The notes below the pieces were generated by a model. That model did not search any database. It had not been told where the DNA came from and was given only the letters and a program-made list of their open reading frames with translations. Of a stretch of 64,000 nt of DNA, positions 8,073 through 63,235 are shown piece after piece. Origin of the DNA: Mobula birostris (Eukaryota); assembly GCF_030028105.1 (NCBI RefSeq), contig NC_092374.1:178646057-178710056 (forward strand), given 5' to 3'. A program made the translations under genes and the position numbers. Every line of letters starts with the position of its first letter. Within the stretch, counting starts at the first letter, position 1.

Positions 8073-8148
8073 CTGCCTGTTGTCCCGCGACAGAGCAGAG
8101 AGATAACGCGGTGACAAGGAGCGATACCGGTCCGCTCCAGCTCTCCAT
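8073..8148 (-). CDS. Gene 1, coding exon 1: signal peptide MESWSGPVSLLVTALSLCSVAGQQA of a secreted or type I membrane protein
   Basis: gcaATGG start context, 25 codons + 1 nt, donor CAG|GTGAGG, hydrophobic core; paralogous to 63160..63235. Confidence 0.8.
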
Positions 8149-8490
8149 TGCGACAACTCCTTACATCGACTGAACCCTGATCATTAGTCAGTGAACTGCT
8201 GAGGGTGGAGTTAGATTCACAGACGCGGCCAGTCGGTGCAGGTGTAGCCAGTAACTAAACCTCCTTCTACAGAAATGGACTGTGTGGGCAGCGGAGTGCG
8301 GGTGATCGCGGGAGGGAGCGGAGCCAAACCACTTCCAGTCGTGTTGCATCAAATTCGGCGAGTGTAAATTTCAGTAACCTCCCAATAGCCCGAGGGAAGC
8401 TGCTCAGCATAAACCTTCTCCAATCACTGGGTAAAACAAACTTCTGGAATAACTGGGCGGGCCAGGCAGCAGATGTGAAGGGAAATGAAG
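8149..8490 (-). promoter_or_regulatory. Promoter / 5' UTR of gene 1
   Basis: CpG-rich; aligns with 62620-63159, including ACTGGAAGTGGTT (ETS-type GGAA core) and CCCTCAGCAGTTCA. Confidence 0.65.
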
Positions 8491-8524
8491 GTGATGAGAC
8501 ATCTCCTCCAACAATATCCAAAAT

Positions 8525-8995
8525 AGCATCTCTAGGAAGAGGTACAGTCGACGTTTCGGGACGAGACTCTTCGTCAGGACTAACTGAAGGAAGAGCTAGA
8601 GAGAGATTTGAAAGTGGGAGGGGGAGGGGGAGATCCAAAATGACAGGTAAGACAGGAGGGGGAGGGATGGAGCCAAGAGCTGGACAGGTGATTGGCAAAG
8701 GGGATATGAGAGGATCATGGGACAGGAGGCCCAGGGAGAAGGAAGGGGGGAGGGGGGGAAAACCCAGAGGATGGGCAAGGGGTATAGTCAGAGGGACAAA
8801 GGGAGAAAAAGGAGAGTGAGAGAAAGAATGTGTGTATATTAATAAATAACGGATGGGGTACGAGGGGGAGGTGGGGCATTAGCGGAAGTTTGAGAAGTCA
8901 ATGTTCATGCCATCAGACTGGACGCTACCCAGACGGAATATAAGGTGTTGTTCCTCCAACCTGAGTGTGGCTTCATCTTTCCAGTAGAGGAGGAT
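8525..8995 (-). mobile_element. Penelope-like element 3' fragment
   Basis: Minus strand encodes EATLRLEEQHLIFRLGSVQSDGMNIDFSNFR*, as in the copies at 46.9 and 60.9 kb, followed by the same CT-rich 3' region. Confidence 0.85.
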
Positions 8996-8999
8996 AGGG

Positions 9000-9317
9000 A
9001 GGCCTTCTTTTTTAAAACGCTCGGCGCTCACCCGACTGACATCACGCGTCTGCGCAGTGGTGCCACTCTTTCCCTTGGAGTTGTTAAAACAACTATTGCT
9101 ACTGCCCTAGCTCACTTAATGAGCTACAGCCTCACCACCTTCCTTACTTCAAATAAAATACCTCTGCAGACCGTTCTCGTTTTAAAGGAACTTACCTGGC
9201 CTTACGTCACTTGGAGTGAAGCTCGTCCTCAGCCTCTGCTCATTGAAGCCTCTCGAGACAAAGCCTTCCTACTCTGTCTCCCTCTACTCCGTTGCCCGCT
9301 ACAATGTTGCCCGATCC
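9000..9317 (-). mobile_element. Probable CR1 5' UTR-like fragment, inverted relative to the adjacent CR1
   Basis: CpG-rich, with a strong internal donor CCAG|GTAAGT on the minus strand; resembles elasmobranch CR1 5' ends as I recall them, not confirmed by alignment. Confidence 0.4.
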
Positions 9318-12300
9318 GTTGGGGCCCTACAAGGTGAATTTAGGGAGTTAGGAGATAAACTAAAAAGTAGGACCACAAAGGTAATAATCTCTGGATTACT
9401 ACCAGTGCCACATGCTAGTCAGAGTAGAAATAGGAGGATATATCAGATGAATACGTGGCTTGAAAAATCGTGCAAGCAGGAGGGATTCAAATTTCTGGGG
9501 CATTGGAACCAGCTCTGGGGGAGGTGGGACCAGTACAAACAGGACGGTCTACACCTGGGCTGGGCTGAAACCAATGTCCTGGGGGAGCGTTTGCTACTGT
9601 TGTTCAGAAGGATTTAAACTAATGTGGCAAGGGGGTGGGATCAAGTGCAGAGAGACAGAGGGGTGTAAAATGAGGGCAGAAGCAAAAAGTAGTAAGGTGA
9701 AAAGTAAAGGTGGCAGGCAGGCAAATCCAGGGCAAAAATCAAAAAGGGCCACTTTTCAACATAATTGTATAAGGGCTACGAGTGTTGTAAAAAGAAGCCT
9801 GAAGGCTTTGTGTGTCAATGCAAGGAGCATTCGTAACAAGGTGGATGAATTGAATGTGCAGATAGTTATTAATGAATGTGATATAGTTGGGATCACAGAG
9901 ACATTGCTCCAGGGTGACCAGGGATGGGAGCTCAACATCCAGGGATATCCAATATTCAGGAAGGATAGATGTGAAAGAAAAGGAGGTGGGGTACCATTGC
10001 TGGTTAGAGAGAAGATTAATGCAATAGAAAGGAAGGACATTAGCCTGGAGGATGCGAAATCAATATGGGTAGAGCTGCATAACACTAAGGGGCAGAAAAC
10101 GCTGGTGGGAGTTGTGTACAGGCCACCTAACAGTAGTAGTGAGGTTGGGGATGGCATTAAACAGGAAATTAGAAATGCGTGCAATAAAGGAACAGCAGTA
10201 ATAATGGGTGACTTCAATCTACATATAGATTGGGGTGAACCAAATTAGTAAGGCTGCTGAGGAAGAGGATTTCTTGGAATGCATGCGGGATGGTTTTCTG
10301 AACCAACATGTTGAGGAACCAACTAGAGAGCAGGCCATTCTAGACTGGGTATTGAGCAATGAGGAAGGGTTAGTTAGCAATCTTGACGTACGAGGCCCCT
10401 TGGTTAAGAGTGACCATAATATGGTAGAATTCTTCAATAAGATGGAGAGTGACATAGTTAATTCAGAAACAAAGGTTCTGAACTTAAAGAAGGATAACTT
10501 TGAAGGTATGAGATGTGTATTAGCTAAGATAGACTGGCAAATGATACTTAAAGGGTTGACGGCGGATATGCAGTGGCAAGCATTTAAAGATCGCATGGAT
10601 GAACTACAACAATTGTTCATCCCAGTCTGGCAAAAGACTAAACCAGGCAAGGTAGTGCACCCGTGGCTGACAAAGGAAATTAAGGATAGAATCAACTCCA
10701 AAGAAGAAACATACAAATTAGCCAGAAAAAGCGGCATTTGGAAATTCAGAGTCCAGCAGAGGTGGACAAAGGGCTTAATTAGGAAATGGAAAAAAGATTA
10801 TAAGAGAAAGCTAGCAGGGAACATAAAAACTGACTGTAAAAGCTTTTATTGATAGATGAAAAGAAAAAGATTGGTTAAGACAAATGTAGGTCCCTTACAG
10901 TCAAAAACAGGTGAATTGACCATGGGGAACAAGGACATGGCAGACCGATTGAATAACTACTTTTGTTCTGTCTTCACTAATGAGGACATAAATAATCTTC
11001 CAGAAATTGTGGGGGACCGAGGGTCTAGTGAGATGGGGGAACTGAGGAAAATACATGTTAGTAGGGAAGTGGTGTTAGGTAAATTGAAGGGATTACAGGC
11101 AGATAAATCCCTATGGCCAGACGGTCTGCATCCCGGAGCGCTTAAGGAAGTAGACCAAGAAATAGTGGATGCATTAGTGATTATTTTTCAAAACTCTTTA
11201 GATTCTGGATTAGTTTCTGAGGGTTGGAGGGTGGCTAATGTAACCCTGCTTTTTAAAAAAGGAGGGAGAGAGAAACTGGGGAATTATAGACCGGTTAGCC
11301 TGGCATCGGTGGTGGGGAAAATGCTAGAGTCAGTTATCAAAGATGTGATAACAGCACATTTGGAAAGCGGTGAAATCATCGAACAAAGTCAGCATGGATT
11401 TGTGAAAGGAATATGATGTCTGATGAATCTTATGGAATTTTTTGAGGATGTAACTAGTAGAGTGGATAGGGGAGAACCAGTGGATGTGATATATTTGGAT
11501 TTTCAAAAGGCTTTTGACAAGGTCCCACACAGGAGATTAGTGTGCATACTTAAAGCACACGGTATTGGGGGTAAGGTATTGATGTGGATAGAGAATTGGT
11601 TGGCAGACAGGAAGCAAAGAGTGGGAATAAACAGGACCTTTTCAGAATGGCAGGCAGTAACTAGTGGGGTACTGCAAGGCTCAGTGCTGCGACCCCAGTT
11701 GTTTACAATATATATTAATGATTTAGACGAGGGAATTAAATGCAGCATCTCCAAGTTTGCGGATGACATGAAGCTGGGCAGCAGTGTTAGCTGTGAGGAG
11801 GATGCAAAGAGGATGCAGGGTGACTTGGATAGGTTAGGTGAGTGGGCAAATTCATGGAAGATGCAATTTAATGTGGATAAATGTGAGGTTATCCACTTTG
11901 GTGGCAAGAACAGGAACACAGATTATTATCTAACTGGTAGCCAATTAGGAAAAGGTAAGGAGCAATGAGACCTGGGTGTCATTATACACCAGTCATTGAA
12001 AGTGGGCATGCAGGTACAGCAGGCGGTGAAAAAGGCAAATAGTATGCTGGCATTTATAGCGAGAGGATTCGAGTACAGGAGCAGGGAGGTACTACTGCAG
12101 TTATACAAGGCCTTGGTGACACCACACCTGGAGTACTGGGTGCAGTTCTGGTCCCCTAATCTGAGGAAAGACATTCTTGCCATAGAGAGAGTACAAAGAA
12201 GGTTCACCAGGTTGATTCCTGGTATGGCAGGACTTTCATATGAAGAAAGACTGGATCGACTAGGTTTATACTTGCTGGAATTTAGAAGCTTGAGGGGGGA

Positions 12301-13385: not shown

Positions 13386-13429
13386 CCCTTCAAGCAAAAG
13401 GTGTAGCATGGGCAATTGTATGGCTCTCA

Positions 13430-19647: not shown

Positions 19648-22600
19648 ATAGAAACATAGAAAATAGGTGCAGGAGTAGGCCATTCGGCCCTTCGAGCCTG
19701 CACCGCCATTTATTATGATCATGGCTGATCATCCAACTCAGAACACCACCCCAGCCTTCCCTCCATACCCCCTGACCCCCGTAGCCACAAGGGCCATATC
19801 TAACTCCCTCTTAAATATAGCTAATGAACTGGCCTCAACTGTTTCCTGTGGCAGAGAATTCCACAGATTCACCACTCTCTGTGTGAAGAAGTTTTTCCTA
19901 ATCTCGGTCCTAAAAGGCTTCCCCTCTATCCTCAAACTGTGACCCCTCGTTCTGGACTTCCCCAACATCGGGAACAATCTTCCTGCATCTAGCCTGTCCA
20001 ATCCCTTTAGGATCTTATACGTTTCAATCAGATCCCCCCTCAATCTTCTAAATTCCAATGAGTACAAGCCCAGTTCATCCAGTCTTTCTTCATATGAAAG
20101 TCCTGCCATCCCAGGAATCAATCTGGTGAACCTTCTCTGTACTCCCTCTATGGCAAGGATGTCTTTCCTCAGATTAGGGGACCAAAACTGCACACAATAC
20201 TCCAGGTGTGGTCTCACCAAGGCCTTGTACAACTGCAGTAGTACCTCCCTGCTCCTGTACTCAAATCCTCTCACTATAAATGCCAGCATACCATTCGCCT
20301 TTTTCACCGCCTGCTGTACCTGCATGCCCACTTTCAATGACTGGTGTATAATGACACCCAGGTCTCGTTGCACCTCCCCTTTTCCTAATCGGCCACCATT
20401 CAGATAATAATCTGTTTTCCTATTTTTGCCACCAAAGTGGATAACTTCACATTTATCCACATTAAATTGCATCTGCCATGAATTTGCCCACTCACCCAAC
20501 CTATCCAAGTCACCCTGCATCCTCTTAGCATCCTCCTCACAGCTAACACTGCCACCCAGCTTCGTGTCATCCGCAAACTTGGAGATGCTGCATTTAATTC
20601 CCTCATCCAAGTCATTAATATATATTGTAAACAACTAGGGTCCCAGCACTGAGCCTTGCGGCACCCCACTAGTCACCGCCTGCCATTCTGAAATGGTCCC
20701 GTTTATTCCCACTCTTTGCTTCCTATCTGCTAATCAACTCTCCACCCACACCAATACCTTACCCCCAATACCGTGTGCTTTAAGTTTGCACACTAATCTC
20801 CTGTGTGGGACCTTGTCAAAAGCCTTCTGAAAATCCAAATATACCACATCCACTGGTTCTCCCCTATCCACTCTACTAGTTACATCCTCAAAAAATTCTA
20901 TGAGATTCGTCAGACATGATTTTCCTTTCACAAATCCATGCTGACTTTGTCCGATCATTTCACCGCTTTCCAAATGTGCTGTTATCACATCCTTGATAAC
21001 TGACTCCAGCAGTTTCCCCACCACCGACGTTAGGCCAACTGGTCTATAATTCCCCGGTTTCTCTCTCCCTCCTTTTTTAAAAAGTGGAGTTACATTAGCC
21101 ACCCTCCAATCCTCAGGAACTAGACCAGAATCTAACGAGTTTTGAAAAATTATCACTAATGCATCCACTATTTCTTGGACTACTTCCTTAAGCACTCTGG
21201 GATGCAGACCATCTGGCCCTGGGGATTTATCTGCCTTCAATCCCTTCAATTCACCTAACACCACTTCCCTACTAACATGTATTTCGCTCAGTTGCTCCAT
21301 CTCACTGGACCCTCTGTCCCCTACTATTTCTGGAAGATTATTTATGTCCTCCTTAGTGAAGACAGAACCAAAGTAATTATTCAATTGGTCTGCCATGTCC
21401 TTGCTCCCCATAATCAATTCACCTGTTCCTGTCTGCAGGGGACCTACATTTGTCTTTACCAGTCTTTTCCTTTTTACATATCTATAAAAGCTTTTACAGT
21501 CCGTTTTTATGTTGCCTGCCAGTTTTCTCTCATAATCTTTTTTCCCCTTCCTAATTAAGCCCTTTGTCCTCCTCTGCTGAACTCTGAATTTCTCCCAGTC
21601 CTCAGGTGAGCCACTTTCTCTGGCTAATTTGTATGCTTCTTCTTTGGAATTGATACTATCCCTAATTTCTCTTGTCAGCCACGGGTGCACTACCTTCCTT
21701 GATTTATTCTTTTGCCAAACTGGGATGAACATTTGTTGCAGTTCATCCATGCAACCTTTAAATGCTTGCCATTGCATATCCACCGTCAATCCTTTAAGTG
21801 TCATTTGCCAGTCTACCTTAGTTAATTCACGTCTCATACCTTCAAAGTTACCCCTCTTTAAGTTCAGAACCTTTGTTTCTGAATTAACTATGTCACTCTC
21901 CATCTTAATGAAGAATTCCACCACATTATGGTCACTCTTACCCAAGGGGCCTCTCATGACAAGATTGCTAATTAGCCCTTCCTCATTGCTCAAAACCCAG
22001 TCCAGAATAGCCTGCTCTCTAGTCGGTTGCTCGACATGTTGGTTCAAAAAACCATCCCACATACATTCCAAGAAATCCTCTTCCTCAGCACCTTTACCAA
22101 TTTGGTTCACCCAATCTACATGTAGATTGAAGTCACCCATTATAACTGCTGTTCCTTTATTGCACACATTTCTAATTTCCTGTTTAATACCATCTCCGAC
22201 CTCACTACTACTGTTAGGTGGTCTGTACACAACTCCCACCAGCGTTTTCTGCCCCTTAGTGTTACGCAGCTCTACCCATATCGATTCCACATCTTCCCGG
22301 CTTATGTCCTTCCTTTCTATTGCGTTAATCTCTTCTTTAACCAGCAACGCCACCCCACCTCCCCTTCCTTCATATCTATCCCTCCTGAATATTGAATATC
22401 CCTGAACGTTGAGCTCCCATCCCTGGTCACCCTGGAGCCATGTCTCTGTGATCCCAACTATATCATAATCATTAATAACAATCTGCACTTTCAATTCATC
22501 CACCTTATTACGAATGCTCCTTGCATTGACGCACAAAGCCTTCAGGCGTTCTTTTACAACTCTCTTAGCCCTTATAAAATTATGCTGAAAAGTGGCCCTT

Positions 22601-23026
22601 TTTAATGCTTGCCCTGGATTTGTCGGCCTGTCACTTTTACTTTTCTCCATAGTACTTTTTGTTTCTACCCTCACTTTACACCCCTCTGCCTCTCTGCACT
22701 GGTTCCCATCCCCCTGTAGTGAACTAACCTCCTCACGCCTAGCCTCTTTAATTTGATTCCCACCCCCCAACCATTCTAGTTTAAAGTCATCTCAGTAGCC
22801 CCCGCTAATCTCCCTGCCAGGATATTGGTCCCCCTAGGATTCAGGTGCAACCCGTCCTTTTTGTACAGGTCATGCCTGCGCCAAAAGAGGTCCCAATGAT
22901 CCAAAAACTTGAATCCCTGCCCCCTGCTCCAATCCCTCAGCCACGCATTTATCCTCCACCTCATCGCATTCCTACTCTCACTGTCGCGTGGCACAGGCAG
23001 TAATCCCGAGATTACTACCTTTGCGG
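19648..23026 (-). mobile_element. Young CR1 LINE: ORF1 esterase C-terminus + near-intact ORF2
   Basis: ORFs 22776..22994 (DGLHL), 20734..22770 and 19738..20634 are broken only by in-frame TGA and TAG; tail at 19648-19665. Confidence 0.97.
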
Positions 23027-28351: not shown

Positions 28352-31325
28352 CCCAGAGCGATAGAGCAGTGAAAGAAGTGCATGGAGTAAAGCCAAATCT
28401 AACATCCAGAGAGGCTTTGAGGAAAGAGAAGCAGAATAAACGGTGTAAATACAGTAAGGTAGAAGGGCTGAAATGTGTATACCTCAATGCAAGATGCATC
28501 AGGAACAAAGGTGATGAACTGAGAGCTTGGATACATACATGGAATTATGATGTAGTGGCCATTACAGAGACTTGACTGGCATCAGGGCAGGAATGGATTC
28601 AAAATATTCCTGGATTTCAGTGCTTTAAAAGGGATAGAGAGGGCGGGAAAAGGGGAGGAGGGGTGGCATTATTGGTCAGGGATACTATTACAGCTACAGA
28701 AAGGGTGGGTAATGTAGGAGGATCCTCTTTTGAGTCAGTGTGAGTGGAAGTCAGGAACAGGAAGGGAGCAGTTACTCTACTGGGGGTATTCTATAGGCCC
28801 CCTGGTAGCAGCAGAGATACAAAGGAGCAGATTGGGAGACAGATTTTGGAAAGGCGCAAAAATAACAGGGTTGTTATCATGGGTGACTTTAACTTCCCTA
28901 ATATTGATTGGCACCTGATTAGTTCCAAGAGTTTAGATGGGGCAGAGTTTGTTTAGTGTGTCCAGGACAGATTCCTGTCACAGTATGTGGACAGGCCGAC
29001 CGGGGGAATGCCATAATAGATCAAGTACTAGGTAATGAACCGGGTCAGGTCACAGATCTCTCAGTGGGTGAGCACCTGGGGGACAGTGACCACTGCTCCC
29101 TGGCCTTTAGCATTATCATGGAAAAGGATAGGATCAGAGAGGACAGGAAAATTTTTAATTGGGGAAAGGCAAATTATGAGGCTATAAGGCTAGAACTTGC
29201 GGGTGTGAATTGGGATGATGTTTTTGCAGGGAAATGTACTATGGACATATGGTCGATGTTTAGGGATCTCTTGTGGGATGTAAGGGATAAATTTGTCACG
29301 GTGAGGAAGATAAAGAATGGTAGGGTGAAGGAACCATGGGTGACAAGTGAAGTGGAAAATCTCGTCAGGTGGAAGAAGGCAGCATACATGAGGTTTAGGA
29401 AGCCAAGGATCAGATGGGTCTATTGAGGAATATACGGAAGCAAGAAAGAAGCTTAAGAAGGGGCTGAGAAGTGCAAGAAGGGGGCATGAGAAGGCCTTGG
29501 TGAGTAGGGTAAAGGAAAACCCCAAGGCATTCTTCAATTATGTGAAGAAAAAAAGGATGACAGGAGTGAAGGTAGGACTAATTAGAGATAAAGGTGGGAA
29601 GATGTGCCTGGAGGCTGTGGAAGTGAGCAAGGTCCTCAATGAATACTTCTCTTCGGTATTCAGCAATGAGAGGGAACTTTATGACGGTGCGGACAATATG
29701 AGTGAGGCTGATGTTCTGGAGCATGTTGATATTAAGGGAGAGGAACTTTTGGAGTTGTTAAAATACATTAGGACAGATAAGTCCCCGGGGCCTGACGGAA
29801 TATTCCGCAGGCTGCTCCACGAGGCGAGAGAAGAGATTGCTGAGCCTCTGGCTAGGATCTTTACGTCCTCGTTGTCCACGGGAATGGTACCGGAGGATTG
29901 GAGGGAGGCGAATGTTGTCCTCTTGTTCAAAAAAGGTAGTAGGGATAGTCCGGGTAATTATAGACCAGTGAGCCTTAAGTCTGTGGTGGGAAAGCTGTTG
30001 GAAAAGATTCTTAGAGATAGGATCTATAGGCATTTAGAGAATCATGGTCTGATCAGGGACAGCCAGCATGGCTTTGTGAAGGGCAGATCATGTCTAACAA
30101 GCCTGATAGAGTTCTTTGAGGAGGTGACCAGGCATATAGATGAGGGTAGTGCAGTGGATGTGATCTATATGGATTTTAGTAAGGCATTTGACAAGGTTCC
30201 ACAGGGTAGGCTTATTCAGAAAGTTAGAAGGCATGGGATCCGGGGAAGTTTGGCCAGATGGATTCAGAATTGGCTTGCCTGCAGAAGGCAGAGGGTAGTG
30301 GTGGAGGGAGTACATTCAGATTGGAGGATTGTGACTAGTGGTGTCCCACAAGGATCTGTTCTGCGACCTCTACTTTTCGTGATTTTTATTAACGACCTGG
30401 ATGTCGGGGTAGAAGGGTTGGTTGGCAAGTTTGCAGACGACACAAAGGTTGGTGGTGTCGTAGATAGTACGGAGGATTGTCAAAGATTACAGAGAGACAT
30501 TGATAGGATGCAGGAGTGGGCTGAGAAGTGGCAGATGGAGTTCAACCCGGAGAAGTGTGAGGTGGTACACTTTGGAAGGACAAACTCCAAGGCAGAGTAC
30601 AAAGTAAATGGCAGGATACCTGGTAATGTGGAGGAGCAGAGGGATCTGGGGGTACATGTCCACAGATCCCTGAAAGTTGCCTTACAGGTGGATAGGGTAA
30701 TTAAGAAAGCTTATGGGGTGTTAGCTTTCATAAGTCGAAGGATAGAGTTTAAGAGTCGCGAAGTAATGATGCAGCTCTATAAAACTCTGGTTAGGCCACA
30801 CTCGGAGTACTGTGTCCAGTTCTGGTCACCTCACTATAGGAAGGATGTGGAAGCATTGGAAAGGGTACAGAGGAGATTTACCAGGATGCTGCCTGGTTTA
30901 GAAAGTATGCATTATGATCAGAGATTAAGGGAGCTAGGGCTTTACTCTTTGGAGAGAAGGAGGATGAGAGGAGACATGATAGAGGTGTACAAGATAATAA
31001 GAGAAATAGATAGAGTGGATAGCCAGCGCCTCTTCCCCAGGGCACCACTGCTCAATACAAGAGGACATGGCTTTAAGGTAAGGGGTGGGAAGTTCAAGGG
31101 GGATATTAGAGGAAGGTTTTTTACTCAGAGAGTGGTTGGTGCGTGGAATGCACTGCCTGAGTCAGTGGTGGAGGCAGATCACTAGTGAAGTTTAAGAGAC
31201 TACTAGACAGGTATATGGAGGAATTTAAGGTGGGGGCTTATATGGGAGGCAGGGTTTGGGGGTCAGCACAACATTGTGGGCCGAAGGGCCTATACTGTGC
31301 TGTACTATTCTATGTTCTATGTTCT
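28352..31325 (+). mobile_element. CR1 LINE ORF2 (APE+RT), same subfamily as copy A
   Basis: YLNARCIRNK, GDFN and SDH motifs; ORF 29497..31185 RT (FADD); (TTCTATG)n tail at 31308-31327. Confidence 0.97.
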
Positions 31326-34589: not shown

Positions 34590-35190
34590 AAAAACTCTTC
34601 ATGCAGTTAATGCTTGATCAAGTTTGCATAGCCCTCACTAATGCACCCATGATGGACTATAGTGAGCTTGCTAAAAAGGCTGATAGTCTACACTCAGCTA
34701 GGCAGTGGTGCATCATTCCTCCTCCTTTCTCTACCTCAATAAGCCCAGTCAGAAAGGTCCCCAACAAGAGGATGCCCGTGGCTGTGAAACTAACAATGTT
34801 GGGTCTGTGCTTTTATCATGCTCACTTTATTCCAAACATGAAGAAGTGCCGGCCATTTTCTGCTTTGACACTTCCAGGACATTGGGACATCAGAGATCTG
34901 TGAACACCGTGAGCTTCAACTGCCAGGGTTGTCTGCTATTCATTATGGACATCTATTCAAGGTGACGCTTCCTGTGTGACACGTGCTCAAGTGTGTGTGC
35001 TGCCAGCATAGCCTATTGAGCAGAAGGCAAAGAGCTATGAGGTCTTTCTGGAGGCTGACAACGGCAGCAAGATCCGGACTTAAAGGACACGACAGGTGTC
35101 GCTCTGCTTCAGTGGGTGACATTACACATGGGACTTTGTCCTTGCTAAAGTGGCTGGACCTCTGCTCGATGTAGATTTCCTGTGTGTCCA
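34590..35190 (+). mobile_element. Degenerate Ty3/Gypsy gag C-terminus + aspartic protease
   Basis: LCFYHAHF...KKCRP knuckle-like segment, then LLFIMD...RFLCDT.AQVCVLP...ADNGSKI...PLLDVDFL. Confidence 0.75.
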
Positions 35191-38825: not shown

Positions 38826-39049
38826 CTATATGTTATAATTATGTGGGTTTTTTCAGTTTTTCAGTCTTGTTCTCTCCTGTGTTTCTGTGATATCACACCG
38901 GAGAAATATTGTATCATTTCTTAATGCATGCATTACTAAATGACAATAAAAGGGGACTGCGTGTCCTCATAATCTAATCTGATCTAATCCAAAATCGGTC
39001 AAAAAAGAGTGAATGAATGGCGCGGAACGATTTGGAAGTCGCTGATGGG

Positions 39050-40070
39050 TTGAGCTCTTGTCGATCAAAGGATTTTAACAACAGTAAAAATTGAGAGCTT
39101 CCTACTTCTAGCCTCACTGGCATGTGGTACGTAGCAATCCTGAGATCACAACTTTGGAGGTCCTGCCCTTTAATTTAGCACCTAACTCCTTGAACTCCTT
39201 TCTATTTCTCTAACTAACAAATCCACTATCACCACTGCTCACCTCTTTTTCCCCATTCTCTTATGAATCACAGAGCCAGACTAAGTGCCAGAGACCTGAC
39301 CACTGTGACTTTCCTCTACCTGGTCATTCCACCACCACCCCCGCCCCCGAAATATCCAAATTGATATTCCTGTTGTTGAGAGAGATGGCCACAGGGGTAC
39401 TCTGCACTATCTGTTTAATCCCATTCCCTTCCTGACCGTCATCCAATTTCCTGTGTCCTGTGCCTTTGGTGTAACTACCTCTCTATATTTTCTATCTATC
39501 ACCCTCTCAGCTTCCTGATTGATCTGGAGTTCATCTAGTTCCAGCCTCAATTCATTAACGTGGATCGTTAAAAGCTGCAGCTGGATGCACTTCTCATTAG
39601 GGATACTGGAGGTCACCCTGCCTTCCCACATCCCACAAGAGGAGCATTCCACTATCCTGCCTGTCATCCCTACTATTTTAAATAAAAAGAAGGGAAGAAC
39701 AATAAACTGTTGGGAAAATATCTACCTACAGCTTTTCGCTTTCTCTCACTGAAGCTTCGAAGCTAAAACCTCAAAATCCTCACTCCGACTATCCACTCAA
39801 ATGATGGCTACTCCACTTGCCCCTGCCTTCATTTAATTTGTTCTTGCCAATCAATGCTGATCGCTGATTGGCCATTGCTTAAAACCCCAAACTGCCACGT
39901 GTCAATGCCCTATATATTCAATCAGCAAACCTGAGTGAGCTACGTCTTCTCATGCTTTGGATCTCTGTTTTTCCATTGCTCAAAACACCAAACTGCCGCG
40001 TGTCAATGCCTGATATACTGAATTGGCAAAGTTAAGACAGCTACATCTTCTCAGGCTTGGTACCTCTGCT
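39050..40070 (-). mobile_element. CR1 5' UTR and internally deleted ORF1
   Basis: ORF 39407..39667 VECSSCGMWE...KCIQLQLL (zinc finger/leucine zipper), then KELGAKLKGRTSKVVISGLL; about 100-bp tandem duplication in the UTR (39880-40070). Confidence 0.8.
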
Positions 40071-41419: not shown

Positions 41420-44089
41420 GTGAGCACAACACAGTGAATTTCTGGATGTGCCAGGGAACTGCTTTCTCTTCCTCAAGGAAGAAATAAAATCAAGGTTCCC
41501 CCCCCCCGCCATAAAAACAGGAAATTTCATATTGTACTGTCTTCACATATATTTTCTTGCAGCACAGGGTAGTCGAGGCCTCTGGGTGAGGACATTCAGG
41601 ACATGGTTCTGCACCTAATTTTGTGCAACAACAAAGACTCCAGAGTTAGGGGTATGGAAGGAAACGGACAGTTGACATATCAAGTCAAAATCCTTCATCT
41701 GGATTTGATCCAAAATGTTTAATCTCCATTTCCTTCCACAGACACAGCTTAACACTATGAGCTCCCCAAGGAGTTTGGGTGTGGCTCCAGTTTGCAGCAT
41801 CTGCAGTCTCTTCTGTCCCCCCAGGTAGGGATCTGTTGTCTGAGACTCAGAGTTACATTTGCTGTGAACTACCCACTGCACCCCAGTCCAACTCCAGCTG
41901 AGTAATGTTACACAGATCCTGCCTATTCCACAGAGCAGATGACGAAGAAGAATAGTTCTTAGTGTGTGCATGAGGAAATCAGAGCAAGTGATAGAGAAGT
42001 GTGATTGGATGGGCATGGGGCTGTGAAACCTGTGGAGGAATAGAGTTTAGGCTGTTTTGGAAGGCCTGGAATTTAGCAGCAGGAGTTTTGTGTTTAGACA
42101 AACAGCAGGGACTTAGATGTTAAAAGGAAAATCCTGAACCAAAGAAACACAGACCAGTGCACTGGGAAACAGACTGTCCTTGTTATTCTTCAGCCTGGTG
42201 CTACCGTGACTGAGAAGGGACAGCAATCAAAACACCTCATGAACCTATTTACTATCCTGATCTTCTAACCTGGCCTGAAAACAACTTCCACTAATGGCCT
42301 ATTTCCCCATAATCATTTTCCAGTTTAATCACATCAATGAGGACCACAGGGCAAACCTTTCCGATTTGGTTATGATTCCCAGAGATTCCTTCTTAAGGAT
42401 TTAATTCCCCTCCAACCCCGCTGATTATTTTTGATCTCAGCCTTTTACTTTAGACTATTTTGCTAATATCTTTCCTATCTACTGCATCCTGGACCCTTAC
42501 AGCTTTTCATATCTCCCTTCAATATCTTCTGCTCCCAAGAAGCAACTGCAACTGCTCAACTGTCCTCAAAAACAAAAGTACCCAGACTTTGCAGATCTCC
42601 CCTACACCCTCTCTTGTGCTATATCATCTTTGTAGTTCACGTAACATGTGCCAACTTTACTTGTTGGGCAGGACTCAGTGAGCCCCATGGAGCAGGTCCC
42701 ATACTATGGTTCATAGTTATGTTTGCAATAATTATTGGAGTGATGTAGAGGAGCAGTTTAGAGATAGCTAAGGCATTACTACAGGTGGGTAAACAGAGAT
42801 CCATTATCTAATCCTATTTTCTGTCACAGTACTGGACAACCAATCTCTTCTCATTTTTCCTTTGCAGATAGTGTTTGGCCCTAACTCAAGCGCAGCTTTG
42901 AACACAGGGTGGAGCCTCAGCCTGGTCCGGTTATGAATGGCCACATATTTCAGTAAACTTAGTGTTGTATCAGTGTGGAAACTGATTAGCTTAATCTTCT
43001 GCTGCTTTGCAATGCACCTTTTTACCAGTTTTAACTTTTTCTTACATCTCACTCAGAATTCAGGTTTCAGTGTTGTGGTGTGTTGAAATCTGAGCATCTC
43101 ATCCACAAGGTCTTACCTGAGATGAGTTGCTCTCCTCAACTTTCGCTAAAATATCAATATCATATATCAGACCATTGCTGTGATGGGCTGTGGCCAAGGA
43201 AAGTTAGTGGGACAGAGCAGAGAAAGCTTTTCTGGGCAATTGAAGGTACCTCACTGGAGGTGGGAATGCTGTGGACACTGGAGACCCGAAAGTAATTCTT
43301 TCCTTAATGGAGATTGGGAGGGTCCAACATTTAGCTTAAAGTATAATCAGGAGCCTCTGGCTAATGGAGTAATTTGGTTTGAAATTAGAGTTGGGAATAT
43401 CTGAGAATCATAAAATAATTGTAAATAGATACATAAATATGTGTGTGGCGACCTCGCTCTCTCCTTCTTGCTTCTCCCAAAGGAAGGTTCTTGTATTCTA
43501 ATGATCTATCTCTCTTCCTCAATGCCGTCAGAGGATGGTGCCAGAGCAAGATGAAATCAACACAGTTTGCGGATTGGACTCTAATTCACATGTGCTGTGT
43601 TTCTAGTTTTTCTGGTGGGTCATTTTTTTTGTTACTAGTTTGTGTGATAGTGGTGCATATACAATGCAGCAGCCTCTCGGGGGCCAACCAGAGGTGCTTT
43701 TATCTTTGTTAAATGTCTTTGCATACATAGTGAAACTGTTCTTGACTCCAACAACCACATGTACAGCAGGTCTACTGCATCAGTGAGCTGCTCATTGTCC
43801 GGAGTAGCTGGCTAGGGTGTTATAAGTGCCGGCTGGTGGTTCAGAGAAGGTGAGTCGGCCCATTGGGCTAAGGAAGTTAGGTCAGGCCGTTGGGCCAAGA
43901 GATCTCAGTCAGGTCGTCAGGCCAAGGGATTCGAGTGGAGCTGCAGGAGCTGGATTGGATTTGGGAGCGCTAAACTGGGTGCAGACCATGCTGCTGCTTG
44001 CTACTCGATGGCACCCAGGTTAGCTCTCGCGAACTGCTCTCCCGAATTTCACTACGGAGCATCTTCGCGTCATCCTGAAATTGGCTGGA

Positions 44090-47559: not shown

Positions 47560-47790
47560 CATGCAGCATTCACTTAATACCATCTCTGACAATGCAACCC
47601 ATTCTCAGCACAGCATCCCCCCCCCAAGGGTGCAGACATGCAATGCTACAACATTGCCCCACTACCTAGTATTTGACCATGCACTGCTCTCTCTGCGCAA
47701 CAATGCAACTCACCAATGCCACAGTGCTCCCCCAGCACTGCACCTTTGACACTGCATCACTCTCTCAGCAATGGTCTTTCAGATAATTCA
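47560..47790. repeat. Diverged minisatellite, about 30-bp unit (tgacaatgca.cactctctcagcactgca)
   Basis: Motif recurs at 47587, 47674 and 47747. Confidence 0.45.
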
Positions 47791-48379
47791 CTTCTGAATG
47801 TGAATCAGTGTCATTGCTCCAATGGTGGGGTCCACCACTCCAGAAGTATAGTACTTCCCTGCAATTATCAATTTGGATTAGACCAGGTGAAAATGTGCTT
47901 CGATGGAATTAGTCCCAAATCTATGTAGCCAGACCAATCATCTCCCTGCAATCAAGGGGCAAAAAGCATTCTGATCCATCTGTGCATGTTCAAAGTCTTT
48001 GGAATTGATTTCTCAGCTCTTTTCTGTCTTCCCCAATCTATCTCTTCATGTTTCTATTTGTAACAGCACTTAGCCATAGACAGACTGGTCCTTCAGCCTG
48101 CTGAGTCTGTGCTAACCCATCTCCTACATTTCACTCTCTCCACATTTTCATGGACTCCTCCCCCTTTCCCCACATTTCATACTCACTCACACACTAGGAG
48201 GAACTTATAACTGTTTGCTAACTTAACAAGGAACATAAGGGAAATTTCTTAGACAGGGAAGGAAACAGGAAGATCTGGCGGAAACCAATGTGGTCACAGA
48301 GTTTGCGACTAAAGCACAATGAGGAGAGGAAGTTGAGTTACACAAGGTACCTGCTCCAGATAATTCAGAGTTGCTCATT

Positions 48380-49699: not shown

Positions 49700-51290
49700 A
49701 TGTGAAGTCTCGCTCCCTCCGGATGAACCGGACCTGGTGGCATCGAGATTCATCGTCACCGAGGAGGACGTTAGAAGGCCCTTCCTGAAGATAAATCCAA
49801 GGAAGGCGACGGGCCCAGATGGCATCCCAGGACAGGTTCTCCAGGCCTGTGCAAGTGAGCTAGCTGGAACGTTTACTGACATTTTCAACTGTTCCTTGCT
49901 TCAGTCTAAGATCTCCTCCTGTTTCAAGAAGGCAACGACAATCCCAGTGCCGAAGAAGAACAAGGTGGCATGCCTGAATGACTATCGACCTGTGGCTCTG
50001 ACATCAATTGCTATGAAGTGCTTCGAGAGATTGGTTATGGCACACATAACCACAGCCTACTGGTAAACCTCGACGCTTTGTAATTTGCCTACCGAAGCAA
50101 CAGGTCAATGGCAGATGCCATCTCTCTGGCCCTACATTCCTCCTTAGAACACCTGGAGAATAAAGACACATATGTAAGGCTCCTTTTCATTGACTACAGC
50201 TCTGCCTTTAATACCATCATTCCAAATAAACTGATTCCTAAGCTCCGGAACCTGGACCTTAGCACTCAGATCTGCAGCTGGATCTTCAACTTCCTCATAG
50301 ATAGGACCAGGCTGTAAAAATAGGGGATAAGCTCTCCTCTACAATCATTCTGAGCACTAGTGCCCCACGAGGATGTGTACTCAGCCTCCTGCTGTACTCA
50401 CTGTACACCCATGATTGTGTAGCCAAGTTTCCATCAAGCTCAATATATAAGTTTGCTGATGACACAACAATTGTAGGCCGTATCTCGGATAATGATGAGT
50501 TTGAGTACAGAGAGGAAATTAAGAACCTGGTGGCATGGTGCGAAGACAATAACCTATCCCTCAACATCAGCAAGACGAAGGAATTGGTAGTTGACTTCAG
50601 AAGGAGTAGCGGACCGCACGACCCAATTTACATCGGTGGTACGCAAGTGGAACAGGTCAAAAGCTTTACATTCCTCGGGGTCAATGTCACAAATGACCTG
50701 ACTTGGTCCAACCAAGCAGAGTTCACTGCCAAGAAGGCCCAACAGTGCCTTTACTTTCTCAGAAATCTAAAGAAATTTGGCCTGTCCCCTAAAACCCTCA
50801 CTAGTTTTTATAGATGCACTGTAGAAAGCATTCTTCTAGGATGCATCACAACCTGGTATGGAAGTTATCCTGTCCAAAACCGAAAGAAGCTGCAGAAGAT
50901 TGTGAACATGGTATAGCACATCACACAAAACAATCTTCCGTCTGTGGACTCACTTTTCACCGCACGCTGTCGGAGCAGTGCTGCCAGGATAATCAAGGAC
51001 ATGACCCAGCCAGCCAACAGACTTTTCGTCCCTCTTCCCTCCGGGAGAAGGCTCAGGAGCTTGAAGACTCGTATAGTCAGATTTGGGAACAGCTTCTTTC
51101 CAACTGTGATAAGACTGCTGAACGGATCCTCCAAATATCCGGACCTGCCTCTCAGCTTTTTTGTACTACCTTACTTTCCATTTTTCTATTTTCTATTTAT
51201 GATATATAATTTAAATTTTTAATATTTACTAATTGTTTCTATTTTTAATATTTAATATTTGTGATCCAGGGAGTGGGAAGTGCAGAATCA
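49700..51290 (+). mobile_element. Rex1/Babar-like LINE, RT and 3' end
   Basis: [50 protein letters not shown] motifs. Confidence 0.92.
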
Positions 51291-53086: not shown

Positions 53087-56000
53087 TTCATTTCTAAATC
53101 TTTTTATTAATATATAATCTTTTACAGCTATGAAATACAGATATTCAACAAATTAGTGTATATATATAATTAATAATGCTGAAGAAAAAAGAACATATAT
53201 ATGCTAATGAAAAATAAAATTATGAAAGAAAAAGAAGGAAAAAAGGGAAACACAGCTAAGTAAAAAACACCCACTAACTATAAAAAAAAGAGGAAAAAAA
53301 ACCCATTAGGAACCAACTCCCGGAGAGATATATCTTACAATCATATATAAATAAAAGAAGAAAAGGAAAACAACAACTGCAAAATCACATTTATATAACA
53401 TAAAATTGGAAGGAAACCATGTAAATTGATTCAAATTAAATGATAATATTTAGCAAAAGAGCCCCACCTTCTTTCAAAATCAAATCAGGGATCAAAAGTT
53501 CTACTTCTAATTTTTTCCAAACTAAGACATAACATTACTTGGGAAAACTATTGAGTTAGTGTAAGAGCAGAGGTATCTTTCTACTTCAATAAAGTAGCTC
53601 TTCTTGCCAACAATGTAACAAATGCAATTACATGTTGGTTTGAAAATGAAATACCCTGAATATGATGCAGAACTATTCCAAATAGAACAGTCAATACATT
53701 AGGTTGTAAATTGATTTTCAAAGATTTAGAAATTGTAGAAAATAAAGATTTCCAAAAAGATTTCAACGAGGGACATGACAAGAACATATGTGACAAAGTA
53801 GATACTTCATTTTTGCACCTATCACGATAATTATCTATATTAGGGAATATTTTGCATAGTCTTTCCTTTGTTAACTAATAGCGATGAACAACTTTAAGCT
53901 GAATTAAAGAATGATTGGCACATATCGAAGAAGAATTAACCATTTTCAAAACTCGCAACCAGTCTTCATTAACAAAAGTCATGTTAAGTTCTCTCTCCCA
54001 ATCTTGTTTAATCTTTAGTGAGAGGTTATCTTTTTGTAGTAAAAATAAATGATAAATTCTACTAATGGAACCTCTCACTGAGGGATTCATATTCAAAATA
54101 GTGTCCATCAAATCAGATTCTTGCATATATGGAAACATAGAAACATATTTTGTGAAAAATATATATTTTACCTGTATATATTGCAAGAAATGTGTGTGAG
54201 AGAGAGAATATTTGCTAATTAACTCTTCAAAAGACATCAGTCGACCCTCAGTAAATAAATCTGCAAAAGAACAAATCCCCTTATTTCTCCATAAAAGAAA
54301 GATACGATCAGTAATTGAATGTTTAAACAGCAAATTTCGAAATACAGGACTAGACAATTTAAATTGTTTAGAATTAAAAGAGTTGCGAAACTGAAGCCAA
54401 ATCCATAAGGACTGTTTAATAACAGGGTTGAAATTTAAATTAGAAATTTTAGCAAGTTGTAAACTTAATGGAGCTCCTAATACTGAAGTTAAATTAAATT
54501 GATTTATAGCTTTAAATTCTAAATCAATCCAACTGGTTTTTGGTTCTTATCGAGCCAATGTAACCAAAAATATAATTGTTGAATATTAACAGTCCAATAA
54601 TACAAACTTAAATTCGGTAGCGCAACTCCACCTTCTTTTTTAGATTTTTGTAAATGAAACTTATTAACTCTTGGTTTTTATTATTCCAAATAAAGGACAA
54701 AATAGTAGAATCAATTTGATCAAAAAAATTTTTGGTTAGGAAGATAGGTATATTTTGAAAAATATATAAAAATCTAGGTAAAATAATCATTTTCATGGCA
54801 TGAATACGGCCTATTGAAGAAAGTCTAAGAGGATTCCATCTAGAAAATAATTGCTTTATAGAGTCCAATAAAGGAACTACATTAGCTTTATAAAGATCTT
54901 TATAATTTCTTGTAATGATAATACCCAAATATTTAAAAGAATTCACAACTCTAAATGGAATATCCTTATTTATAAAAACAGGAACATTTAAAGGGTACAA
55001 TTCACTTTTATTTAAATTAAGTTTATATCCTGAAAATTTTCCAAAATCATTTAATAATTCCAAAAAATTAGGAATAGATTCTTCAGGATTCGAGATATAA
55101 ACCAAAAGATTATCTGCATAGAGAGAAATCTTATGTACGGTCCCATTTATAGAAATACCATGAATATTGTTAGCTTCGCAAATTGTTATAGCCAAAGGCT
55201 CCAATGCGAGATTAAATAATAAAGGACTTAACGGACACCCTTGTCGAGTACCTCGTGAAAGTAATAAAAAGGGAGACCTAAGATTATTAGTAATGATAGT
55301 AGCAATAGGGTTCTTATAGATCATTTGAATCGACTTATTAAAATTATTACCAAAGCCAAATCTCTCTAATACATTAAACAAATAAGTCCATTCAACTCTA
55401 TCAAATGCCTTTTCTGCATTCAGAGAAATAACACATTGGGGAGTTTTGGTTAATGGTGAATATATAATATTCATCAATCTCCGAACATTAGAATAAGAGT
55501 AACAGCCTCTCATAAAGCCTGTTTGATCCATAGAGATACTTTTAGATAAAGTGTTTTCCAAACGTTTAGCCATTATCTTGGTAAGAATTTTAGCATCCAC
55601 ATTTAATAGCGAAATAACTCTATAAGATGAGCATTCAGTAGGATCGTTATCTTTCTTAAGGATTGAAGAAACAGAAACTTCATAAAAAGAAGAGGGTAAA
55701 TTACCTTCCTCAAAAGCTTCATGAAATATTTCCAAATGGTATGGAGAAAGTAATTTTTCAAATTTTTTGTAAAATCCTACCGAATAACCATCAAGTCCAG
55801 GAGCTTTACCTGATTGCATTGACCATATAGCTTTCTGAATTTCATGCTCAACAATTGGAGCATCAAGGGTCTGTTGATCTTCAGCAGTATTTTGAGGAAA
55901 TTTAATCTTATATAAAAAAAAAGCTTTCATTTTAGAGGGATCTGCTGGAAACTGAGATTTATAAAGATCAGAATAAAAATCCTGAAAGATATTATTAATA

Positions 56001-57147
56001 TCATAATTACTTACTATATCTCCAGTATCTTTACGAACCTTTAAAATTTGTCTTTTAGCTTTAGCAGCCCATAATTGGGAAACTAATAGCCTATTATTTT
56101 TATCCCCAAAAATATAAAACTGACTTTTTAATTTAAGCAAATATCCTTCATTAGGATGAGTTAATAATAAAGTATATTGTGATTGTAGTTCCACTCTTCT
56201 TTTAAATAATTTAACGTTTGGAAAAATTGCCTTGAGATTATCTAATTCTTTAATTTGTTTAGCAATTTTGCCTAATTCTATTTTGTCTGTTTCTTCAACT
56301 TAGCTAAATAAGAAATAATCTGATCACATAAATAAGCTTTTAACGTATCCCAGATTACTAACTTTGAGACGTTTCCTGTATTATTAAACTGAAAAAACTC
56401 TTTTGTCTGAGTTTTAATAAACTCAACAAAATCTGAACTTTGTAACAAATATTCTGGAGAACGCCAGGGTGGTCTTGTAGAAACAACATCTTACAAATCA
56501 AATATTAAATTTAAAGGAGTATGATGAGAAATAACAATTGTATCGTATTCACACTTCTGAACATTAAGTAAAAGTCGAAGGTCGGCTATAAAACAGTCGA
56601 TTCACAAATATTTATTATGAACTTGTGAAAAAAAGGAATATTCTCTAAGGATGCATATATCTCCAGACTTCGATTAAACCATAATCAATTAAAAAGAAAT
56701 TAATAAGTGATGCAGAATGATTAGGGAGTTGATGTCTATAGATGATGATTTATCTAACAAGGGATTTAAGCAAATATTAAAATCTTCACCCATTAATAAC
56801 ATATATTCATTTAAATCAGGTAATAGAGCAAAAGTATTTTTTTAAAAATGAAGGATCAACAGTATTTGGTCCATATATTAACCAAAACCATTTTCTTATT
56901 GTAAATGGTTCCTTTAACAATCAAAAATCTACCATTAATATCAGGTATAATATCCTCCTGATTAAAGGGAATACTGGAAACAATAAAAATAGAAACACCC
57001 CTAATCTTACTTTGAGAGTTTGCGTGAATCTGAGGGTTCTTTCAAAATTTAAAAGATCGATTGTTATCACATAACCTGACATGAGTCTCTTGTACAAAAA
57101 TTATATCAGGTTGGAATCGATTAATAATTTTAAATGTATTCTTATGC

Positions 57148-61270: not shown

Positions 61271-61599
61271 TTAATATCCCCTGTTCCCTGGAGTTTTCGT
61301 CCTTGCCTTTCTCTGTATCTCTCTTGTACTCTGTATCCTCACTTGTCAGGTGTCATTTAACTTGCAAGAATTTCTGCCAATCTACTATTCAGACATCCCC
61401 ACTTATATTATTCTGATCAAACTTCTACCAATTTAGGACAGGATATCAGTCGTGGTTGAAACCTGGAAAGTATGGCACACTGAGGAAGGGGGAAGAATGT
61501 GGCAGGGTGGGTTGTGGGAAAGGGACTGCAATAGGAGGAAGAACACCCGAAGGATGGTGAAGGGAGAACCCACTGGAGAGTGCAAGAGGTCAGGGAGGG

Positions 61600-62050
61600 A
61601 AAGTCATGGCCATACAGCATGAAACAGGCCATTCAGTCCATCATGTCCATGTCAACCAGTGAGTGCCCTTCCTTATTAAACTAATCTTCCAACAATTGTT
61701 CCTTTGTCTTCTACAGCTGGGAGATTCAAGTGTTTGTCCAGACACAACTTCAATGATTCTGCTTCCACAACTAACTGGCAATATGTTCCAGATACCGCTC
61801 TCTGGATGAAAAGGTTTTTATCTGAATCTTTTCCCTATCACCCAAGTCGATTACCTCTATAAATACCTGTGACGCAAGGAGTAGAGTCTTGTACTCGATC
61901 TATACTCAATGTAATTTCAGGACCCCTCTAAACAGCCTCTGTCCCGGGGAGAACAAACCCAGCCTCTCCAGCCTCTTCTCATAAATCAAACATTCTAGGA
62001 GCATCTCTTCTCCATCCACTATACTCTTCGCACATCCTTCTTGTAGTGTG
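61600..62050 (-). mobile_element. Old CR1 3' fragment
   Basis: LIYEKRLERLGLFS...RG remnant (ORF 61906..62088) and 3' UTR hairpin. Confidence 0.65.
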
Positions 62051-62168
62051 CAACCGCACGCAGACTCCAACTGAGTGGGAGAACTCAAGAGGGAGGAGAG
62101 GGCACATAGTGTAGTCGACAGGGTATGAGGGAGAGAAGGGATGCATGAAGGAACGTGGGAGAGCGTAC

Positions 62169-62188
62169 GGGGTGGGGAAGGGTTGGGG
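62169..62188 (+). other. G-quadruplex-forming motif
   Basis: GGGG-T-GGGG-AA-GGG-TT-GGGG in a CpG-rich tract about 1 kb upstream of gene 2. Confidence 0.5.
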
Positions 62189-62619
62189 AAAGCGTGCGGG
62201 GTTAGAGAGCGCTTGGGCGGGACGGGAGCGCGTGCACGAATGAAGAACGCGCACGTAGGAAAAGGACAGGGTGGGGTGTAAGCAAGTGAGGAAGTGGGAG
62301 TTGGGAGAGGGATAGGTGCAGCTTGGGGAGCAATGAGTTTGCAAGGAAGTCCGCACTGGCGTCTGGCAGTGTATTGTACAGAAGTGTAATCCTAATTGTC
62401 TCGGAGCGAGGGCGCAAGAGACGAGATCCGGAGAATCGAGTGCACAGAGACACGTGAATAAGCAGTCGCTAGAATTTAGAGCAGAAACCAAAATTCTGGA
62501 GGATCTCGTGTGGAGGGAAGTGGTCAGTTGACGTTTTCGAATCTTATCTCTACTCTCAGCCCTTTACTTAGCCGGCTACCTGCCCTTCACCCTTCCAGTC
62601 TGGATGAAGTACTTTGACC

Positions 62620-63159
62620 CAAAACGTCGTCTGTGCATTTCCCTCCAGAGATGCTGCCTGACCCGCTGAGTTCTTGCATCAGTTTTGTTTTACAGCAGGG
62701 ATTCCCAGCCTGGGATCCATGGCCCCCTTGCTTAATTATATTGGTCGATGGAATTAAAAAAGATTGGGAACCCCTGTTTTATACAGCGGCTGGAGACGGT
62801 TTGTGGTGAACATCTCCTGGGAGGGTCCTGGAAATCTGCCCAGAGATGTGTCAGTGACTGGGTGTTGCTGCCTGCGCCTCTCTGTGCCCACATCCTTACT
62901 GGAAGTGGTTCGGCTCCGCACCCTCCACTGCACATCCTGTGCCAGGCCGGCAGTCTACCGCCCCGCCTCCCACTCTCCACACTCCAGAGCAGCGGCGGGC
63001 TGGTTATTTCTGCAGGAAGATTTTTAGTTACAGGAGTTCTTACTGGCTGCTCCTTGTAGCGGGCACTATTTACCCCCGAACTGCCTCCGTGAATCGTATC
63101 TGCGCCCTCAGCAGTTCATTGGCCAACGAGTAGATTTGTCGAGGTGAGGAGACATCGCA
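62620..63159 (+). promoter_or_regulatory. Promoter / 5' UTR of gene 2
   Basis: Aligns with 8149-8490 (minus); ACTGGAAGTGGTT at 62898-62910; GC-box-like CCCCGCCTCC. Confidence 0.65.
62696..62776. mobile_element. 81-bp hAT-type MITE
   Basis: TIRs CAGGGATTCCCAGCCT / AGATTGGGAACCCCTG (13/16); flanks ttttacag and tttta(ta)cag; absent from the paralogous promoter. Confidence 0.7.
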
Positions 63160-63235
63160 ATGGAGAGTTGGAACGGACCGGGATCGCTCCTTTTCACCAT
63201 ATTGTCTCTTTGCTCAGTTGCGGGAAGCCAGGCAG
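63160..63235 (+). CDS. Gene 2, coding exon 1: signal peptide MESWNGPGSLLFTILSLCSVAGSQA
   Basis: gcaATGG start, 76 nt, donor CAG|GTAAG; 20/25 aa identical to gene 1 exon 1. Confidence 0.85.

Follow-up and report, generated by a model that had tools for sequence, protein, structure and literature searches.

Two leader exons in a manta ray genomic window probably belong to an intact gene and a young pseudogene of the UFA lineage of MHC class I

A 64,000-nucleotide (nt) stretch of the 4.0-Gb genome of the manta ray Mobula birostris (C6:178646057-178710056, where C6 is contig NC_092374.1; hereafter the window) contains two short exons that point away from each other and carry predicted signal peptides. 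We propose that both are leader exons of class Ib genes of the major histocompatibility complex (MHC) that belong to the UFA lineage, and we place the probability of this reading at about 0.87. In this proposal, the minus-strand exon (leader A) opens an intact and already annotated gene, A1, and the plus-strand exon (leader B) opens a young pseudogene, B1. The two copies represent old sublineages, type A and type B, whose members are arranged in four convergent pairs. Positions given without "C6" are window positions.

The two leader exons

8073-8148, minus strand: leader A, coding part of exon 1 of the type-A gene A1, encoding MESWSGPVSLLVTALSLCSVAGQQA plus base 1 of codon 26; GT donor at 8072-8071
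63160-63235, plus strand: leader B, coding part of exon 1 of the type-B copy B1, encoding MESWNGPGSLLFTILSLCSVAGSQA; open reading frame (ORF) and GT donor intact

A script count on the window sequence gives 76 nt for each exon (8148-8073 on the minus strand and 63160-63235 on the plus strand), with differences at 14 of the 76 positions and with neither an indel nor a stop codon. Ten codons are changed, half of them (5/10) synonymously, and the two leader peptides share 20 of 25 residues. Both exons begin in the same gcaATGG start and end at a donor (GTGAGG and GTAAGG) that follows base 1 of codon 26, i.e., in phase 1. Their ATG codons lie 55,012 nt apart. The exon pair of the preliminary description is thereby reproduced exactly, including its positions, length, counts, start, phase-1 donors, 25-residue leaders and 55-kb separation of divergent leaders.

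The similarity of A and B extends into the flanks: searches within the same genome give A-to-B matches of 280-360 nt with 71-74% identity (E 1e-32 to 1e-38). The promoter and intron sequences align as previously described, and the alignable block is ~0.6 kb long rather than 0.8 kb. In a MAFFT alignment of A with B, the exon is 81.6% identical, compared with 65% for the 270 nt upstream and 64% for the first 200 nt of intron 1, and indels are present in both flanks. A higher conservation of the exon than of its flanks is the pattern expected for a coding exon amid less constrained DNA.

The peptides have the layout of a signal peptide. Leader A consists of a short polar start (MESWSGP), a hydrophobic core (VSLLVTALSLCSV) and a terminal segment of small residues (AGQQA), and leader B is equivalent. 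Furthermore, the chain of the 8gm8 structure starts at the residue that aligns with Gly26, the first residue past the leader. Judged from these sequence features, the two exons are real signal-peptide exons of paralogous genes, with cleavage predicted.

Family assignment

To which gene family do the leaders belong? A phmmer library search with the alpha1 exon of A1, and then with its best match, led to M. birostris class I proteins in RefSeq. When compared with the PDB by phmmer, residues 26-282 align to class I chains, and type A and type B both find their best match in 8gm8_A ("MHC class I protein"; E 6.5e-62 and 2.5e-62), which is covered over the whole ectodomain from Gly26. Every other PDB chain scores E 1e-28 or worse. 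The Pfam C1-set domain is detected above its curated cut-off in P0130 (XP_072113437.1, the RefSeq protein of A1; E 3e-13), in P0134 (E 4e-13) and in the alpha3 ORF of B1 (E 8e-16). The Pfam MHC_I domain reaches 25.2-25.3 bits in P0130 and P0134 (E 1e-5), mainly in alpha1 and below the cut-off of 28.3, and a six-frame genome search with this profile (PF00129) missed the A and B genes. The alpha1/alpha2 platform is very divergent.

The A and B genes cluster with models from sharks and rays that carry the names MR1-like or CD1d-like. Annotated proteins that start with the leader type come from five species, four rays and the basking shark. In RefSeq models of Hypanus sabinus (type B), M. hypostoma and Hemitrygon akajei, these leader types are followed directly by a GSH... 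or VSH... alpha1, and a basking-shark model joins a similar leader to DSH.... For type A, the M. hypostoma and Hemitrygon akajei models connect the leader straight to a GSH... alpha1, and the Hypanus sabinus type-A model P0117 is included from its listing in that protein cluster, not from its sequence.

UFA has been described as a CD1-like MHC-Ib lineage in the Ib cluster of elasmobranchs (PMC10751288). UFA and UGA are reported as single- or low-copy CD1-like genes that bind lipids, with the lipid groove given as a personal communication (PMC12562908). The manta genes resemble the UFA lineage in their MHC-Ib location, in their position beside other class I genes and in their layout of leader, alpha1, alpha2, alpha3 and short tail, and all eight loci identified in the genome conform to the linkage of the lineage to the MHC class Ib cluster. 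However, UFA is described as single- or low-copy, whereas the manta has eight loci in two sublineages, and one of them (B1) is truncated. The family, which the preliminary description had left unidentified, can thus be assigned to MHC class I and probably to its elasmobranch UFA (CD1-like) lineage on the basis of 8gm8_A, the C1-set domain and the RefSeq models, and the earlier expectation of a secreted or cell-surface immune gene agrees with the nature of MHC class I products. Literature searches retrieved no primary report of 8GM8 or of a UFA structure. Previous annotations and descriptions cover the gene and its family, and their biology is not new.

Gene A1

8148-8073, minus strand: A1 leader
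34831-35081 counted from the ATG at window position 8148, minus strand, outside the window: A1 alpha1
38843-39100 counted from the same ATG, minus strand, outside the window: A1 alpha2
47759-48028 counted from the same ATG, minus strand, outside the window: A1 alpha3
50295-50369 counted from the same ATG, minus strand, outside the window: A1 tail
1-8072, minus strand: first 8.07 kb of A1 intron 1, with long interspersed nuclear element (LINE) reverse transcriptase and endonuclease at 826-3449 and PNMA/zinc-knuckle Gag-like ORFs at 4309-5326

The exon positions are those of XP_072113437.1, an M. birostris RefSeq protein of 309 residues that starts with MESWSGPVSLLVTALSLCSVAGQQA-GSHSLIYYYF and maps at 100% to the five A1 exons. 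Its residues 1-26 correspond to the leader A exon and residues 25-309 to alpha1, alpha2, alpha3 and tail on the same strand, so that the protein lies on five collinear exons with the plan leader/alpha1/alpha2/alpha3/tail and a phase-1 leader junction. The minus strand past leader A contains open exons for alpha1 (GSHSLIYYYFQS...), an alpha2-like domain and a typical C1-set alpha3. The alpha1 acceptor (...ttttactcag/GC TCA CAC) is located at C6:178619374, and codon 26 is completed across the junction as G/GC TCA CAC, which encodes Gly-Ser-His. Among the four type-A genes, the leader-to-alpha1 spacing is 7.2, 7.5, 34.8 or 35.5 kb, and alpha1, alpha2 and alpha3 are collinear downstream of the leader in all of them.

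In the proposed mechanism, donor 8073 would be joined over a retroelement-filled intron of 34,754 nt, measured from the donor to the alpha1 acceptor, to alpha1 and then to alpha2, alpha3 and a short hydrophobic tail exon. By analogy with the family, the A1 leader would direct the heavy chain into the endoplasmic reticulum and would then be cleaved off. From the exon mapping, we identify leader A as exon 1 of the intact gene A1; with RefSeq XP_072113437.1 starting at this very exon, the gene was not hidden, contrary to what the preliminary description had claimed.

Could leader A instead be a relic, with A1 starting at a nearer, unrecognized first exon or inside alpha1? Intron 1 of A1 is approximately 5 times longer than in A3 and A4, and isoform X2 (P0141) starts at a Met inside alpha1. 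However, the spacing in the paralogue A2 is similar (35.5 kb), no other leader copy is found between 8073 and alpha1, and RefSeq isoform X1 uses leader A. Moreover, an isoform that starts inside alpha1 without a signal peptide could not make a class I molecule. We therefore consider a relic leader A unlikely.

Several further features of the A1 gene were observed. In A2-A4, an in-frame upstream ATG extends the leader to MRGVVA-MESW.... The upstream ATG of A1 (8166-8171, minus strand) is followed immediately by TAA, and translation of A1 must therefore begin at gcaATGG. A GC donor after alpha2 (CAAG/GCAAGT) is present in A1 (C6 ~178615105) and in the type-B gene B2 (locus L018) and represents a GC-AG intron conserved in both types. 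Within intron 1, the two adjoining ORFs at 4309-5326 on the minus strand contain a PNMA domain (E 1.6e-23) and a CCHC zinc knuckle, are Gag-like and share the orientation of the host gene; their source may be a Ty3/gypsy element or a domesticated gene.

Gene copy B1

63236-64000, plus strand: start of B1 intron 1, including a (CA)n microsatellite at ~63607-63672
C6:178717034-178717297: former alpha3 exon of B1, 7.7 kb downstream of the leader

Downstream exons of B1 were located by DNA blast against A1 and restricted to collinear matches; a comparison of ORFs with flanking DNA was drowned in retroelement matches. Positions 7515-7647 in the numbering of B1 itself match the DNA just upstream of A1 alpha1, and the base after 7647 starts a match to the end of A1 intron 3 and alpha3 that stays collinear to the tail exon. 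At this jump point, the intact-looking gene B2 (leader at C6:178566794) carries an extra 3.5 kb that contains an open alpha1 (VSHSLTYFYLHS...) and an open alpha2 with good splice sites. B1 is thus without its alpha1 and alpha2 exons by a 3.5-kb deletion relative to B2, with the junction at ~C6:178716864. The alpha1/alpha2/alpha3 order of type A is also found in B0, B2 and B3.

A four-way alignment of the alpha3 region of A1, B2, B3 and B1 identifies additional changes that are private to B1. The AG of the alpha3 acceptor (...ccCTAG or ccCCAG in the others) has become TG (ccCCTG). A run of five G has been shortened to four, and the resulting 1-nt frameshift near the end of alpha3 produces ...SSLPGH-TGA. 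The last base of the alpha3 exon is changed from G to A. The deletion, the acceptor change and the frameshift are all three private to B1 in comparison with B2, B3 and A1. B1 keeps the promoter block, the leader, the donor, the 85-residue C1-set ORF and a tail exon with the same sequence as in P0134. No protein that the searches returned starts with leader B, and the leader of XP_072113434.1, from the type-B gene B0, is 92% identical to it.

We read B1 from its sequence as a young pseudogene in decay. It would be one of four type-B genes and would have lost alpha1 and alpha2 through the 3.5-kb deletion, with acceptor and frameshift lesions in addition. The earlier claim of a pair of paralogous genes is thus incomplete on the B side, where the leader heads a copy with three disabling lesions. 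Truncated fragments and pseudogenes of class I genes also occur in mammalian MHCs, partial HLA class I genes among them. B1 may be likened to them as a duplicated gene with its antigen-binding exons deleted, with splice and frameshift lesions and with promoter and leader retained, but the lineage and the species differ and the likeness is an analogy only.

A RefSeq model of the type-B genes deserves separate mention. XP_072115050.1 (P0138, 581 residues) consists of the B3 leader and B3 alpha1-3 followed by B2 alpha1-3 and a tail, and it spans C6:178438990-178589000 (loci L030, L020 and L017-L019). It probably fuses the near-identical paralogues B3 and B2, which are ~128 kb apart.

Transcripts at leader B

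Transcript evidence comes from small sequencing runs (89-170 million letters), none of which is recorded as RNA and all of which were guessed to be RNA. Several runs hold 29-86% of the words from the 269-nt alpha3 exon, a content not expected of random DNA sequenced at low coverage from a 4-Gb genome, and these runs are regarded as RNA-like. Four runs were mapped to 62400-64000 at 90% likeness. A contig of 846 nt from run X2 aligns to 63088-63235 and continues with 698 unlike letters, and a contig of 484 nt from run X8 aligns to 63011-63235 and continues with 259 unlike letters. Both contigs leave the genome exactly at donor 63235, and contig depth is zero over the adjacent intron (63264-63479) and over 62832-62993. 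The contig ends fit spliced mRNA and validate the donor position for the type-B family.

The X2 contig carries the letters of paralogue B3 at six variant positions (63096 T, 63117 T, 63122 A, 63155 C, 63179 T and 63186 T), and the B1-specific letters include 63096 G, 63117 C, 63122 G, 63209 T and 63216 A. No contig with at least 99% identity to B1 was found in the four runs that hold type-B transcripts, although contigs cannot show absence. The junction at 63235 that the preliminary description had proposed to look for was thus observed in RNA-like contigs of a type-B paralogue or orthologue, and none came from B1 itself. Directly before the B promoter block, a short element (62616-62723) reaches a summed contig depth above 16,000 with dozens of different flanks in all four runs; it is an abundant repeat that probably resembles a short interspersed nuclear element.

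A number of points weigh against our proposal. The lineage name UFA is taken from papers that contain no sequences (PMC10751288, PMC12562908). The mapped runs bear on the region of leader B only and not on donor 8073, and RefSeq isoform X2 of A1 lacks the leader. The contigs on leader B carry variants of B3 or an orthologue instead of those of B1, and the RNA nature of the runs is a guess. Finally, an assembly error might conceivably account for the B1 deletion, a reading that is weakened by the two further independent lesions of B1.

The lesions and the contigs also bear on whether B1 is alive. A functional B1 would splice its leader to a cryptic in-frame acceptor 9 nt inside alpha3 (CCAG/AGG) and would encode a secreted product of ~110 residues, a signal peptide plus one C1-set immunoglobulin (Ig) domain, which would be about as large as beta2-microglobulin. 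B1 has an intact leader ORF, donor, promoter block and alpha3 ORF, the cryptic AG preserves the frame, and the new stop is located ~20 nt before the exon donor. In addition, the M. hypostoma proteins P0139 (...SSLLGH) and P0135 (...SSLLGY) end at the same point, and the tail-less form may predate the species split. However, no contig with at least 99% identity to B1 was found in the four runs, three independent lesions suit decay better than a new function, and the first Ig cysteine is missing from P0139 and P0135 (SLAY or SLPY in place of SLSC), which again suggests decay. A living B1 is thus improbable. Given the alpha3-end stop common to both Mobula species, the B1 line could also be a tail-less secreted UFA branch that predates the split of M. 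birostris and M. hypostoma and that became a mini-gene in M. birostris, a scenario for which we see an equally small chance. The ends of the three sequences (...HSSLLGH in P0139, ...HSSLLGY in P0135 and ...HSSLPGH followed by a stop in B1) could reflect a shared old lesion or repeated slippage in the G run.

Copy number and genomic organization

Genome searches with the A block and the B block find exactly eight copies of the leader block, four for each of the two types. All lie on C6 at 176.94-178.76 Mb and hence within 1.8 Mb. The blocks are 92-96% identical within type A and 94-98% within type B, and each of the eight heads its own class I gene in the correct orientation. The low copy number anticipated by the preliminary description is thus confirmed, and a high-copy repeat with many hits is contradicted by the eight clustered copies.

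This copy number and context lead us to dismiss the reading of the 0.6-kb block as a mobile element, a repeat or a chance ORF with unused exons: the window is indeed dominated by retroelements, but the block has only eight copies in the whole genome, each before a class I gene, the exon is better kept than its flanks with half of its changed codons synonymous, proteins of five species start with the leader type, and the spliced contigs end at the donor.

A genome scan with Pfam MHC_I locates class I exons on C6 at 174.9-175.05, 176.7-176.8, 178.52, 178.80 and 180.2 Mb, which places the window inside the MHC. The eight loci are situated between the classical-type class I matches at 174.9-175.05 Mb and 180.2 Mb, and the other class I genes at 178.52 and 178.80 Mb are interleaved with them. 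These latter copies, at C6:178519977-178522542 and C6:178796672-178804230 (both minus strand), lie between the pair units of the UFA genes and represent a class I gene of more classical appearance (46-64 bits for Pfam MHC_I); alpha2 of the 178.52-Mb copy contains a TAG. A search of the window for a relic of this classical-type gene gave no match below E 0.4.

The eight genes form four convergent pairs in which a type-A and a type-B gene face each other (A2+/B0-, B3+/A4-, B2+/A1- and B1+/A3-). The window spans the head-to-head junction of two neighboring units and includes the head of A1 and the head of B1, which is why its two leaders point apart. Type A and type B proteins are 60% identical. 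In the tree, Mobula B0 and the type-B proteins of Hemitrygon and Hypanus form one clade (100/99), the type-A proteins of Mobula join those of the stingrays, the sawfish sequences are on the A side, and the sharks and Narcine are outside. Since each type has separate stingray orthologues in the tree, the A and B sublineages are placed by these sequences as having split before the divergence of manta and stingrays. The same orthologues rule out a single inverted duplication of A into B. The inverted duplication of the preliminary description thus gives way to old sublineages, four convergent units and a head-to-head junction of neighbors.

Promoter and intron motifs

8149-8420, minus strand: 5' untranslated region (UTR) and proximal promoter of A1, a block that can be aligned with type B; motif GGAAGTGGTTTGGCTCC at 8336-8320
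62850-63159, plus strand: promoter and 5' UTR block of B1; GGAAGTGGTT at 62901-62910; paralogue or orthologue transcripts reach back to at least 63011
7838-7847, minus strand: candidate kB site GGAAAGTCCC (gene strand), matching the consensus, ~225 nt into intron 1 of A1

The core GGAAGTGGTT is identical in all eight copies and is located ~100 nt upstream of the most 5' contig end; the remaining bases of the GGAAGTGGTTTGGCTCC / GGAAGTGGTTYGGCTCC block differ at 1-2 positions. The putative ETS core GGAAGT is located in this block, which is conserved across all eight copies. The kB site GGAAAGTCCC is the only consensus kB site; each of the four type-A genes has it at an equivalent position, and type B lacks it. 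Its conservation carries little weight because the type-A blocks are 92-96% identical. Of the ETS and kB motifs previously noted, the ETS core thus lies in the block common to the eight copies, and the kB site is confined to intron 1 of type A.

Spacer DNA and an orphan last exon

8600-62600, no strand: spacer between the gene heads, mostly LINE-type remains, with reverse transcriptase/endonuclease ORFs at 9460-10248, 19738-22770, 29497-31185 and 54608-56194
42651-43427, plus strand: orphan UFA-type last exon and 3' flank; tail ORF LSEPHGAGPILWFIVMFAIIIGVM followed by a stop at 42674-42748, stop included

The intervening DNA had been described as filled entirely by transposable elements. This holds for the long introns, and the spacer consists mostly of LINE-type remains, but the spacer also contains an orphan last exon that, together with its 3' flank, matches the 3' ends of type-A and type-B genes alike at 73-75% identity. 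The orphan exon has three copies with 94-95% identity (C6:178432378, 178560606 and 178688656), each of which precedes a type-B leader of the same strand by 6-20 kb. Within the window, no alpha-domain exons could be matched to it. The orphan exon appears to be what is left of a third kind of gene in the duplicated unit.

Significance

The new points of this study are small: the organization of eight loci into types A and B, the dissection of B1 and the relic of an orphan last exon in the spacer. Leader A places the first exon of A1 34.8 kb upstream, beyond a retroelement-filled intron. The type-B copy caught in the middle of its decay and the RefSeq model that fuses two paralogues may also be of note to comparative immunologists. 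For comparative immunology, the supposedly single- or low-copy UFA lineage would have expanded in the manta to eight loci, four of type A and four of type B, that are organized as convergent pairs.

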